DNA of 64,000 bases from NCBI RefSeq assembly GCF_963853765.1, contig NC_088855.1:27342001-27406000 (forward strand). The letters run 5' to 3'. A program made the translations under genes and the position numbers. The notes below the pieces were generated by a model, which saw only the letters and a program-made list of their open reading frames with translations, was not told the origin of the DNA and searched no databases. Every line of letters starts with the position of its first letter. Position 1 is the stretch's first letter. Source of the DNA: Magallana gigas (Eukaryota). Below, one piece after another: positions 19,965 through 25,015 of the stretch.

Positions 19965-21737
19965 CTACCGGAATGGTTTTATTTTATCTTGGATAGCACC
20001 CCGGCATGTTGGGCATTGATTCAGGGACCTGGAACATACTTCACATAAATTGAAATGATTGCATGGTCGAAGTAAAATTTCCGAACGACGGTCCAAACAA
20101 ACAACGCAGGTATCGTTGTCGTTTTGGGTATCATTTCCAGCATTCTGGGTGGACGAGGGATTTTGACCACTGTTCAGTGGATGTCGTTGACTGGTGCTTG
20201 CAGGATATTGTGGACTGGTGTTGCTGGGAGGATATGGTGGATTGGTGAAGCTGCTGGGCGGATATTGTGGATGATATCCACCACCAGGCGGTGGAATATA
20301 GTAAGCCGGATCAGGAGGAGGGGCTGAAGGTTCTGCTCTATACGCATTATGGTTGTTCACATTTGCACCGGGTGGTTGAAGTTGGTTTGGTGTTGGTTGA
20401 ATGGAGGCTGGAACGTCCCAGAAAAAAATAAAACATATTTTTGAATTTCAAATATTATTTCCTGGTTTGAGAAGAAAACTTTAGATTAGCAAGGAATATT
20501 TTTGTAAGGCAAGAATGATCATGCGAATTGAATCAATACGCCAAAACAAACGTTTGCCATAGACATACACATGCACCATGCAGTGTTATTAACACCTCCC
20601 AAACATTGTATCAATATAAAGAATTAATAAAAATCAGTTTGTTTTAAAGCATTTCAGATCTACATCATAATCAATGCAAAACATTCAACAAATAAAACAA
20701 TTAAGTTGCACAATCATCTTCAACAAACGTTAAACACTGTTTAAGAATTGACGTAACAGATTAAAAATTTCTATGTGAATTTAATTTACTAAATTTAATA
20801 CCTAAATCCGCAGGGGCAAACATATATATAGATCCAGCGACCAAATGAGCAACTCCGGCTAAAATTGAGAAAGCAAAAGACCAGGACAGATAGTAGCCCT
20901 TCAGCCAAGTTACATATCGGTATTGGCCACCGTAAATACTGCTTCCTATTAACATACTGCCAGCTGAAATGAAAAGAAACGGCCAACTGTTTAAATAGAA
21001 TAATGCATTTTTTGAAATCAGTTGAGATATGAGTTTTAACGAATAATTTTACCTGCAACAAAATTCATCACCGCCGCAGCAACTTGCGCGTCCCTCTTTT
21101 TGAAGGTTTTCCTAACGAACGTACAGAAAATTGACGACACAACAGAAGTCAGAGACATTAGGAGACCAGCACTTTGAAAAAATCGTGTGGCATGAAGCCA
21201 TGCTGAAAAACAAAGTTGAATATAAAAAGAAAGAAAGAAAGGTAAAACTTGTTTACACGGAATATTGATTATGTGATTAACCAATAACCATGCACCTTAT
21301 TCTCCTTGCATTAGTAAAGTTGAAAAATAATGCTTTCATCAAAATTGACAAAAATAAATAAAAATAGAATAAATAGCCAACAGATCAAATGAAGATGAAC
21401 ACAAAACATCATCGTTAAATCTTCTTTCAAGCCCAATTATTGATCTTAAAAGTCTTTCAAGCTTACCTGGTACGCCTTGATTACTATACTCCATAAAATT
21501 GGTGACTGATTGACGGCAAGTGATGTCTGTGTTACTGATGGTCTTGCTACAGTGGTTCCAGAGTCCTTGGTTGCTCTCTGTTGGTCCCTCCGACAGTTCC
21601 ACCCAGTTGTCTGTGCCATAGGACAGGAAGGTGTGGAGAAAGCATGCGAGAATTGTGATAAAGAAGCAAGCTCGACTTCCTTTGGGCGAATCACAAAACG
21701 TGTCTATAGAAGCGGCTAGTTCCCCCGTCACGGTCAT
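19965..21737 (-). CDS. Claudin-like tetraspan-RING fusion (copy D, most divergent, about 341 aa)
   Basis: Exons 21467-21737, 21053-21202, 20802-20963, 19965-20407; phase-1 GT-AG introns; 1026 nt open. Junction APADL/A/SIQP; PSAP and PPYP motifs; RING CVVC..PCNH..CEVC..CPTCR ending KIKPFR*. Confidence 0.85.
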
Positions 21738-22350
21738 TCTCTTGTCTGGGTTGTTTGACTCATTAGGGGAAATGTGGCGCTATATTCCGCATGAAATTCC
21801 AACCGTAACGTCTAGTCTGTTTAGATAATTTCTACAATAATACATAGCTTTTCTCTAATATAAACAATGGTAATCACAAGGTATATATGTGCATTGAAAT
21901 ATATAACGCATGATTGCCAGTTACAAGGTAAGATATCGGGTGCCTGTGTGTGTTAAATACCCATAAATTCAACCCTATTGTATGCACAAAGATAAGCAAT
22001 GAAACGCGCGATAAGTATGTATTGCCCTCAACTCTTCGCCTCTTCATATACGGTTCAAAACGGCACGTAAACTGAAGCATACCTTTACTGCAAGGTCCAT
22101 GAAAACACATACCTTTCTCTCTTCCGAGAACCGTTCCTAACCCATACTTCCTGGTCTATCGATTATGCTGAACGAATCGATCAAATTTATCGTCATAATT
22201 AGAAGACTGCCAGTTGTCTAGCGTTCCGGATATTTAAATTGATCCACAGAGTGTGTGGCATGCACTATAAACGGGTGTTCCTTGTGATAAACCGAAACAA
22301 AAACTAAGGATGTAATCCGCCTATATACAAATCTCCGAGGATACTCAAAG

Positions 22351-25015
22351 ATGACAGTCAAGGACAAGGTTAAAGAATCAATTCTGGCCTGGGGGTGCGC
22401 CCCTTGCGGCCTTACCTGGTCCTTTGGGTTACAAATTGTGATTATTGGATTCTTCTTGGCTGGGTTTTGCTCCGATCACTGGCTAGAGTCGTCTATCGTC
22501 GTGTCTGGGTATGAGTCCAGAAGTCAAGGGTTGTGGCGATTCTGTTATAAGTCTCTTGGAGCCACTTGCTGTGGATACATCAACGATCTCATGTACATAG
22601 AGCGTAAGTTGTCCCCCATCAATGTTTACAGGGATCATGAATACGCAACAATACATGCTGTTATTTTAAACGATAAGTATTTTTTTTTAATTTGAACGCT
22701 GATGAATGTGTATTTTGCTTCCAGCTTTTGTGAACGCCACTAGAGCCTTTCTGGTCATGAGCTTACTTCCGCAAGGCGGTTGCATTTTGGCTGTACTTAC
22801 TGGAATTTTCAAGAAAAGTTATTCTTTTTCAAAATGTTTAGCAGGTGTGCTGAGTGGAATATCAGGTACATCGATCAATACAAATATCTATCGATTAATT
22901 CAGAGTTTTATGACATGTTAACCTGAAGTTGTTATTCGTGTATCTTTTTCCTAAAACACATTCCATTCGATCTTCAACCGAAAAATGAAGGTTTTATACA
23001 CAACTTATACATAGGGATATCAAGCTTAGTCAAATGATTAGGTTACCTATGACTCAAATGACTTTTCTGATCAATATTTTACGTTGTCTTTCGTTGTTGT
23101 CATAAATATTTCACATATTCATCTTCTTTAGAAGCCAGTTTGAAATTTGCTCAAAGCATTTGGAGGCTGTTAAAATGAAATGGCCCTCCCTCTTTCATGG
23201 GGATATAGTTTAGATTTATTAAAAATGCTGTATTTAATTATGAATCTTCAAAAACAACTAGTATTTGGTCAGAAAGTTAAAAGTTGCTTGGATGCATCCT
23301 CAAAAGTGTAGATTTCAGTTTGTTCAAATAATCTTCCACGGGGATACTAAGGTAAGCCACGATAAGATAAAAGAGGCATTATAAAAGCGCCTTTTCCCAT
23401 TATTTCGCCTACACCTGTGTCTGAACGAAAAGTACCTGTTACCAAATATAGTTTCATGTACCTGTTGCAATATGATTTTCGATACTGCTTTTATAATGGT
23501 GCAAGTAACAACTGATTTGTCATAAATTCGGGAAACCTGCATCAAAAAATGAATATATAAAACTTTATGTAAAATATCAGTTTGTACATGTATTCTGAAC
23601 CGTGATTGCAATGAATATAAGTGTACAGTTATAGATATAAATTACACGTATCTAATCGGCGGGATTTTTTATTCAAATTATTCTGTTTAATTCAGCCTGA
23701 GTATGATCAGAACCAATATGAACATATCTCTNNNNNNNNNNNNNNNNNNNNNNNNNNNNNNNNNNNNNNNNNNNNNNNNNNNNNNNNNNNNNNNNNNNNN
23801 NNNNNNNNNNNNNNNNNNNNNNNNNNNNNNNNNNNNNNNNNNNNNNNNNNNNNNNNNNNNNNNNNNNNNNNNNNTTGAAGAGATATGTTCATATTGGTTC
23901 TGATCATACTCAGGCTGAATTAAACAGAATAATTTGAATAAAAAATCCCGCCGATTAGATACGTGTAATTTAAACTAGTCTTATCATGCATCGATTATTA
24001 ATATTTGAAAAAATAGTCACTACCTGGAATCGATCCAACGACCACAAAATCAATAAGACCCCGCGTTACCACTAGGCCACGCATCTAAGAGATTCAATGG
24101 CTGTCTTTTAAATATACAGGCATGTATATGGCTATATACATGATTGTATCAGAAAAAATATAATTTTCAAATAGTCAAATATACCATTTCTTATCGCATA
24201 CTAACTATTTTCCTTATATCCCTGACAAAACCTGACTATTTTAATGATGGCGTGAAAGATAATAAAGACTCATGTAATTATGATATTTGCGTTTATGCGT
24301 TTTGTTTGCTAAATTGCTATATTTAAGGCAAAATCGTATATTTAAAAATCTTCCATAATGAACTGCTATGCTGTATATAACTTATGATTGTGAAAAAAGT
24401 ATCATAGTGAAAAAAATTCCTGCCAACTAAAAATGAAGGTTAAATATGTCAGGATACATTGTAATTTAGGCAACAGCAGGGGTTATGAGAATATTTCCGA
24501 GTTTCCCACACAGAATGCAGCCTGAAGTCGGAGGCTTAAGCCTTATCTGAGTATAAGAAGTACAAGAGCACCTCATTCTCTGTACACCACTAATGAAGCC
24601 TGAAAAATTATGAAATTATATCAGAATTGTAGGACAGAAAACTATGAAAATCATCGTTTGTTATTCTCAATATTGACATACAACTATACAACAAAAATTA
24701 TGAATAATGGTACATAATTAATAAAAATACATCGATGTAACCAAAGTGCTATTTACATATGATAACGTGTTTCCTTTAATCATCAATAATTATTAACATT
24801 TGTGAATATTATCCACCTTTCTTTCAGCTTTTTGCATCATACTTGCTGGAATCATCTATGGCGGAGCCTCCCAAGACGAGGACTCCACCAGCCTATACAG
24901 CCTCTCCTGGTCCTACGCTCTCTGTTTCGTCAGCGGCTTCCTCTACATCCCGTTCACGTGTTTTATTTGCTGCACGGACGACTCGCCTGATGAAAGTTTA
25001 TCTTCTACCACGTGA
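22351..25015 (+). CDS. RING-less claudin/PMP22-like tetraspan protein (gene E, about 193 aa), divergent from copy D
   Basis: Exons 22351-22603, 22725-22865, 24828-25015; phase-1 GT-AG introns; 582 nt open. W..GLWRFC..CC ECL1 motif, YSLSWSY before TM4, Cys cluster after TM4, short acidic tail ending SSTT*. Confidence 0.85.
23638..23972. repeat. Perfect inverted repeat (about 93 bp) flanking a 143-N gap (23732-23874)
   Basis: 23638-23731 is the reverse complement of 23880-23972. Confidence 0.9.
24023..24082 (-). other. tRNA-derived (SINE-head-like) fragment
   Basis: Reverse complement GCGTGGCCTAGTGGTAACGCG...GGATCGATTCCAGG has A-box and B-box-like motifs; no complete cloverleaf. Confidence 0.45.

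Follow-up and report, generated by a model that had tools for sequence, protein, structure and literature searches.

Head-to-head claudin-fold genes with and without a RING share a compact start region in the oyster Magallana gigas

Are two membrane protein genes that lie head to head held together only by a common start, or do their products also work together? This question is raised by a locus in Magallana gigas (NCBI RefSeq assembly GCF_963853765.1, contig NC_088855.1, positions 27,342,001 to 27,406,000 of the forward strand; this whole stretch of 64,000 nucleotides (nt) is referred to as the window). Here, gene D on the minus strand encodes a protein with four transmembrane (TM) helices and a C-terminal RING, and gene E on the plus strand encodes a related tetraspan protein that lacks a RING. 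A preliminary description had proposed that a bidirectional promoter co-expresses a catalytic and a non-catalytic subunit. We show here that D and E share one compact start region around an ~80-nt highly conserved block and that both genes are commonly, not always, expressed together. Organisation and conservation give solid support for a two-gene unit that is real and old. We tentatively favour the view, to which we give somewhat less than an even chance, that D and E are paralogs of ancient origin with the PMP22/claudin fold, arranged as a divergent unit, in which E would be the non-catalytic partner of D.

The start region between the two genes

The start codons of D (21737, minus strand) and E (22351, plus strand) point away from each other with 613 nt between them, and the gene models confirm this head-to-head arrangement as it had been described. 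Transcripts were mapped to positions 19700-25500 from two stranded runs of poly(A) raw reads and two sets of Logan RNA contigs. The stranded reads have the expected orientation, with the first mate on the plus strand for D and on the minus strand for E. Two RNA runs, six merged contigs that carry both genes and one contig that carries only D (L014) contain the joint 21831|22113, which reads CT..AC on the plus strand. Since this is a GT..AG intron of the minus strand, located in the 5' untranslated region (UTR) of D and 281 nt long (21832-22112), the D mRNA starts in a non-coding exon right of 22113. L014 begins at 22209, and together with the merged contigs it defines 22113-22209 as the minimum extent of this first exon. 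Contigs that carry only E start at 22265, 22286, 22293 and 22325, and two more start at 22133. Because the first exon of D reaches at least to 22209 and E contigs start at 22265, no more than ~55 nt separate the two start regions, and a partial overlap is probable.

A TATA-like sequence, TATTTAAAT (22233-22241, plus strand), lies ~25-30 nt upstream of the E contig start at 22265 and may serve as TATA box. The conserved core of the region (22147-22226) lies inside the non-coding first exon of D. It is 92-95% identical to the corresponding sequence on an RNA contig from another oyster species (L003), compared to ~77-84% identity in the coding sequences. The core carries ATCGAT palindromes; one ATCGAT is present in each of two Saccostrea intergenic regions, and both are mutated in a decayed second unit of the window (see below). 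We regard this motif as a lead only. By contig-derived positions, D and E fall within the usual definition of a bidirectional pair, with divergent genes whose starts are less than 1 kb apart, and a shared bidirectional promoter is well supported. The promoter proposed earlier thus stands and gains a compact start region, in which the non-coding exon of D adjoins the TATA-like box and the mRNA 5' ends of E.

Co-expression had been proposed along with the promoter, and both mRNAs do occur in the same RNA samples, often on one assembled contig. In six M. gigas RNA contigs (L005-L010) D exons 4-3-2-1 are followed by 22113-22603, 22725-22865 and 24824-25402, with the 281-nt intron removed, so that all six contain both spliced coding sequences. 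For one allele of E (P0052), the longest contig measures 2-5 kb in 16 of 43 collection blocks, from which the six contigs derive. At least half of the sampled words of 21450-22900 occur in 18 runs from 9 studies, and for RNA runs this requires exon 1 of D together with exons 1 and 2 of E. Both mRNAs were found in run X10 (contig depth ~62 for D and 47-57 for E) and in run X14 (~39 for D and ~19 for E), and run X20 has reads of both genes; contig depths and run counts are poor measures of expression level. Expression of the two genes is not strictly coupled, a point to which we return below.

Gene models and protein features

Gene D encodes 341 amino acids (aa) in four coding exons (21737-21467, 21202-21053, 20963-20802 and 20407-19965), all joined in phase 1, and the RNA reads and contigs confirm its three coding introns. 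The second exon of the gene (21467-21831) contains 5'UTR (21831-21738) and, from the ATG at 21737, the sequence for an N-terminal helix, TM1 and extracellular loop 1. TM2, the following loop and the start of TM3 are encoded in coding exon 2 (21053-21202), whose joints are present in RNA. Coding exon 3 (20802-20963) covers TM3 to TM4 and ends in a phase-1 donor at the place where exon 3 of E continues to its stop codon. A fourth exon is found only in D; it encodes a proline-rich linker and the C-terminal RING (~19986-20117) and terminates with the stop codon at 19967-19965. Within this exon zf-C3HC4_3 is recognised with an E-value of 1.6e-13. The 5'UTR of D has several upstream ATGs, one of which (21763) overlaps the main ATG out of frame, and a 12-nt insertion polymorphism at 21782 that is seen in run X14 and in contigs L005-L010. 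Over the first coding exon (21446-21833) a few reads of run X19 (first mate on the minus strand, depth 2.6) suggest plus-strand RNA; this run has no E reads.

Gene E encodes 193 aa in three exons with GT-AG introns, again all in phase 1, and its product is identical to the RefSeq protein XP_011443963.3 of M. gigas. Exon 1 (22351-22603) encodes the N-terminal helix, TM1 and most of extracellular loop 1. Exon 2 (22725-22865, phase 1 on both sides) encodes TM2, the intracellular loop and the start of TM3. Exon 3 (24828-25015) covers TM3 to TM4 and a short tail rich in cysteine and acidic residues, with the stop codon at 25013-25015. The RNA reads and contigs confirm both introns (22603|22725 and 22865|24828). 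Intron 2 contains an assembly gap (23732-23874) between perfect 94-nt inverted arms (23638-23731 and 23879-23972). Two stranded raw reads contain the in-frame joint across the gap, as do contigs from another two RNA runs. Transcript contigs encode all 193 residues, and the gap-spanning joint also occurs in transcript-derived proteins. Thus, the reading frame of E is independent of the gap, which bears only on the length of intron 2.

Several side observations concern the same gene. The inverted arms may represent a fold-back element or an artefact of the assembly; another gap in the window (~17980-18120), located in an intron of the pseudogene described below, has no such arms. Two stretches of intron 2, 24030-24088 and 23386-23536, collect reads of both strands with loose ends on both sides. 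At 24030-24088 the reads carry unmatched sequence at both ends, as expected for a short repeat, and the stretch appears tRNA-like by eye; 23386-23536 is another dispersed repeat that is expressed elsewhere in the genome. One transcript-derived protein (P0002, 146 aa, a single member) is an isoform of E in which exon 2 is skipped in frame and TM2 is missing; it is probably rare. In the 3'UTR, transcripts match the window to ~25390-25402 and then diverge, and reads with loose ends pile up at 25435-25500, suggesting a repeat insertion or an allelic difference.

Both proteins belong to the PMP22/claudin superfamily. As the preliminary description had noted and the gene models and alignment confirm, D and E both begin with MTV, are built on three phase-1 tetraspan exons and have common motifs, namely W..QGLW..C..C in extracellular loop 1, ATR.F at the start of TM2 and Y.LSWS before TM4. 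They are 29% identical over 189 aa (E-value 3e-12). Searches with D used the 336-aa allele encoded on contig L005 in place of the spliced protein of the window. Over the whole proteins, Pfam PF00822 scores 38.0 bits for E and 40.4 bits for D (gathering cut-off 26.7), and orthologs pass as well. The W-GLW-C-C motif is invariant in the alignments of both proteins. The C-terminal PDZ-binding -YV of classical claudins is absent: E ends in -SSTT and D in its RING. A profile of E finds MP20 in the PDB (4e-8), followed by claudin-18, claudin-3 and TARP gamma-8; with the single sequence, only marginal claudin-3 matches are obtained. The structural model of E, at a predicted local distance difference test (pLDDT) value of 67, has an N-terminal helix and TM helices at residues 19-40, 76-114, 118-146 and 159-180. 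Its extracellular loops have pLDDT <50 and are not built as a beta-sheet. A fold search with this model returns MP20, TARPs, GARLH4/LHFPL4, claudin-11 and NKG7 as top matches. These are weak (template-modelling scores ~0.5-0.57), so that the predicted fold supports membership in the superfamily and does not single out a nearest relative.

The C-termini set the two proteins apart. The RING of D (PF13920, 50.6 and 47.4 bits against a cut-off of 27) has all eight zinc ligands, and these cysteines and histidines are invariant across 8 species or copies. Its profile is nearest to the C-terminal dimer-type RINGs of cIAP1/2, XIAP and BIRC7 (1e-15 to 1e-12), and it also matches that of MGRN1 (5e-8). 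E terminates 13 residues after TM4, and no RING match was obtained for it with Pfam or is present in its orthologs (180-196 aa), in agreement with the short, RING-less cysteine/acidic tail described earlier. The pattern of conservation likewise differs between the proteins: in E the extracellular loops rank highest (0.83 and 0.87) and the cytosolic tail lowest (0.35), and in D TM2, TM3 and the N-terminal helix rank highest.

Conservation of the pair and the case for a partnership

E orthologs of 180-193 aa are found in Crassostrea virginica, C. angulata, Saccostrea cucullata, S. echinata and Ostrea edulis, and a 196-aa relative is present in Pinctada imbricata. In other oyster genera and species they are 61-75% identical to E, and the same genera have RING-bearing D-type proteins. 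All of these relatives, as well as D and E themselves, are annotated only as "uncharacterized", and homology searches found the family in Ostreidae and Pinctada only. A survey of related bivalves had been suggested as a check of the pair, and the head-to-head order is indeed kept in two Saccostrea species, C. virginica, the L003 species and P. imbricata. An opposite-strand D-type gene ends 562 nt (S. echinata) and 569 nt (S. cucullata) upstream of the E ATG. C. virginica has a head-to-head pair and a second pair with 555 nt between the genes, and L003 contains both spliced coding sequences 461 nt apart. In P. imbricata a D-type gene with three tetraspan exons and a RING exon (tblastn E-value 1e-16) lies on the opposite strand upstream of the E-like gene, with ~2.4 kb between the start codons. 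This gene (L004:15-7651, minus strand) is not among the called genes of the record, in which its E-like neighbour is annotated as KAK3086501.1.

A maximum-likelihood tree separates D-type and E-type clades with 100/99 support and places Pinctada at the base of each. Within either clade the two sequences of C. virginica group as sisters, and the second pair has long branches in D-type and E-type alike. Together, the tree and the presence of the pair in oysters and Pinctada indicate that the D/E duplication and the head-to-head order are older than the separation of Ostreida from Pterioida. In the comparison of M. gigas with the L003 species, the ratio of nonsynonymous to synonymous substitution rates (dN/dS) amounts to 0.36 in E and 0.23 in D.

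How might the two proteins act together? A common promoter would place D and E in the same cells, where E could associate laterally with D in the membrane as a non-catalytic partner, in the fashion of claudin-family proteins, which commonly form hetero-oligomers. As E has no RING, any pairing of the two would go through the membrane domain. E might supply extracellular recognition or tune the pairing of the dimer-type RINGs of D, which is suggested by the extracellular loops being its most conserved part. The same pattern suggests that E is not mainly a substrate that D would reach via the poorly conserved cytosolic tail. In a more far-reaching form of this idea, which we consider unlikely, D and E constitute a receptor-type ubiquitin ligase, linked since before the divergence of true and pearl oysters, in which the loops of E would sense a ligand or cell contact and control the RING of D via pairing in the membrane. 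A complex prediction for D residues 1-200 with E (score 0.30, mark 0.34) was used neither for nor against an association. Several points speak against a partnership. Start positions derive from contig assemblies and a very small number of stranded reads rather than from cap analysis of gene expression, and a contig that spans D and E does not prove a single transcript or overlapping transcripts. In stranded run X19 reads were found for D and none for E, so expression of the two genes is not strictly coupled. Three further D-type copies of the window, A, B and C, have no intact E neighbour, the E copy beside C being decayed, and hence a D-type gene can persist without a partner of its own. Finally, entangled promoters alone could keep the two genes linked.

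This last point leads to a linkage that is regulatory only, with interleaved start regions and two proteins that act independently, a reading that we judge quite possible, though still doubtful. Since the first exon of D lies in the proximal promoter of E, any break between the genes would disable one of them. Start regions that abut or overlap are what this reading predicts, and run X19, the survival of copies A, B and C, the low identity of D and E and their different conservation patterns all fit with it. It is less easily reconciled with the Pinctada pair, which is kept despite the ~2.4 kb between its start codons, with the retention of both fast-evolving members of the duplicated C. virginica pair, and with the general tendency of claudin-family proteins to hetero-oligomerise. 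The interleaved starts could also work as an antisense switch. D transcripts that begin inside the 5' end of E would overlap its 5'UTR and start codon, and interference would then result in alternative, not joint, expression. In run X19 about one minus-strand fragment spans 22113 to ~22417 in the absence of E reads, run X20 has E reads and no minus-strand reads over 22028-22415, and RNA contigs are unbroken through 22209-22265. Such a switch is nevertheless improbable: about two reads carry the argument, X10 and X14 contain both spliced mRNAs at comparable contig depths, many single contigs carry the two together, and L014, which has D alone, begins at 22209 and does not reach the E mRNA. That E is a decaying or mis-assembled fragment might be suspected from the assembly gap within the gene and from the true E pseudogene 8 kb away. 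This explanation is refuted by the intact 193-aa frame identical to RefSeq, by RNA spliced across the gap and by the ortholog identities and dN/dS ratio given above. We remain with the partnership of D and E as our favoured, tentative reading.

Neighbouring copies, known systems and significance

With tblastn and blastn searches of the pair against the window, four D-type copies were found, all on the minus strand: copy A (exon 1 at 864-595), copy B (7750-5226), copy C (13566-11769, with its ATG at 13566) and copy D (21737-19965), the gene described above. Head to head with copy C lies a decayed E-like gene on the plus strand (14157-18864), of which the pieces 14157-14398, 14536-14613 and 18712-18864 are recognisable. 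It has several in-frame stops and a frameshift, which identify it as a pseudogene, and has lost the tryptophan of the GLW motif. The unit of copy C and the pseudogene aligns with the unit of D and E through the intergenic region, showing that the pair was duplicated as a unit. No E-like sequence was found by these searches beside copies A and B. The last exon of copy B (5226-5873, minus strand) has a seeming tandem internal duplication, in which tblastn places linker and RING at 5873-5508 and again at 5507-5226. Elsewhere in the window, an intronless open reading frame at 55241-56386 (plus strand) encodes a rhodopsin-type G-protein-coupled receptor (7tm_1, E-value 2e-23), and an open reading frame of 426 aa at 35851-37131 (plus strand) has no Pfam match.

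Within the PMP22/EMP/MP20/claudin superfamily (PF00822, PF13903), D and E share the four TM helices and the W-GLW-C-C first loop. The nearest solved relative is lens MP20 (LIM2), and no named vertebrate member is orthologous to D or E. The oyster D protein differs from the superfamily in carrying a RING, and we found no description of such a claudin-RING fusion in the literature. Likewise, no papers on D or E turned up in literature searches, whether by identifiers of the genes and proteins or by claudin, RING and oyster. A claudin-like tetraspan protein, MOSMO, is a non-catalytic membrane subunit of the RING ligase MGRN1 (bioRxiv 10.1101/2025.09.11.675358). The MEGF8-MOSMO-MGRN1 system resembles the oyster pair in combining a tetraspan with a RING ligase, and its ligase has a RING that the D profile matches. 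However, tetraspan and RING are separate proteins there, bridged by MEGF8, whereas the oyster combines a tetraspan-RING fusion with a paralogous second tetraspan. A specific homology of E to MOSMO was considered and rejected: no MOSMO chain is among the PDB matches of the E profile, and we therefore retain only a functional analogy.

Other parallels concern the gene order and the ligase. COL4A1/COL4A2 and divergent H2A/H2B genes are likewise divergent paralogs with a very short start region, long conservation and duplication as a unit. For collagen IV and histones co-assembly is proven, whereas for D and E it is our proposal. In MDM2/MDMX, BRCA1/BARD1 and the RING-less TRIM paralogs one paralog is a ligase that its relative could modulate, and the RING of D resembles the dimer-type class of IAP and MDM2. 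MDM2/MDMX and BRCA1/BARD1 pair via their RINGs, in contrast to E, which has none. By analogy, the arrangement of D and E may be seen as a variant on bidirectional paralog pairs such as COL4A1/COL4A2 and, as far as the partnership is concerned, on ligases with catalytic and non-catalytic paralogs.

D and E show clearly that annotation based on start codons can miss a true bidirectional promoter when a 5'UTR intron conceals it. If the two proteins act separately, the locus is an ordinary example of a well-documented type of conserved divergent paralog pair. If the receptor-type reading were true, it would be a compact two-gene analogue of MEGF8-MOSMO-MGRN1. So far, we understand few of the ligases that span the membrane and couple an extracellular event to ubiquitylation in the cytoplasm. 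With a RING-fused tetraspan and its RING-less paralog around a start region of ~100 bp, present in two bivalve orders, the locus of D and E is a minimal and genetically linked candidate for such a ligase.

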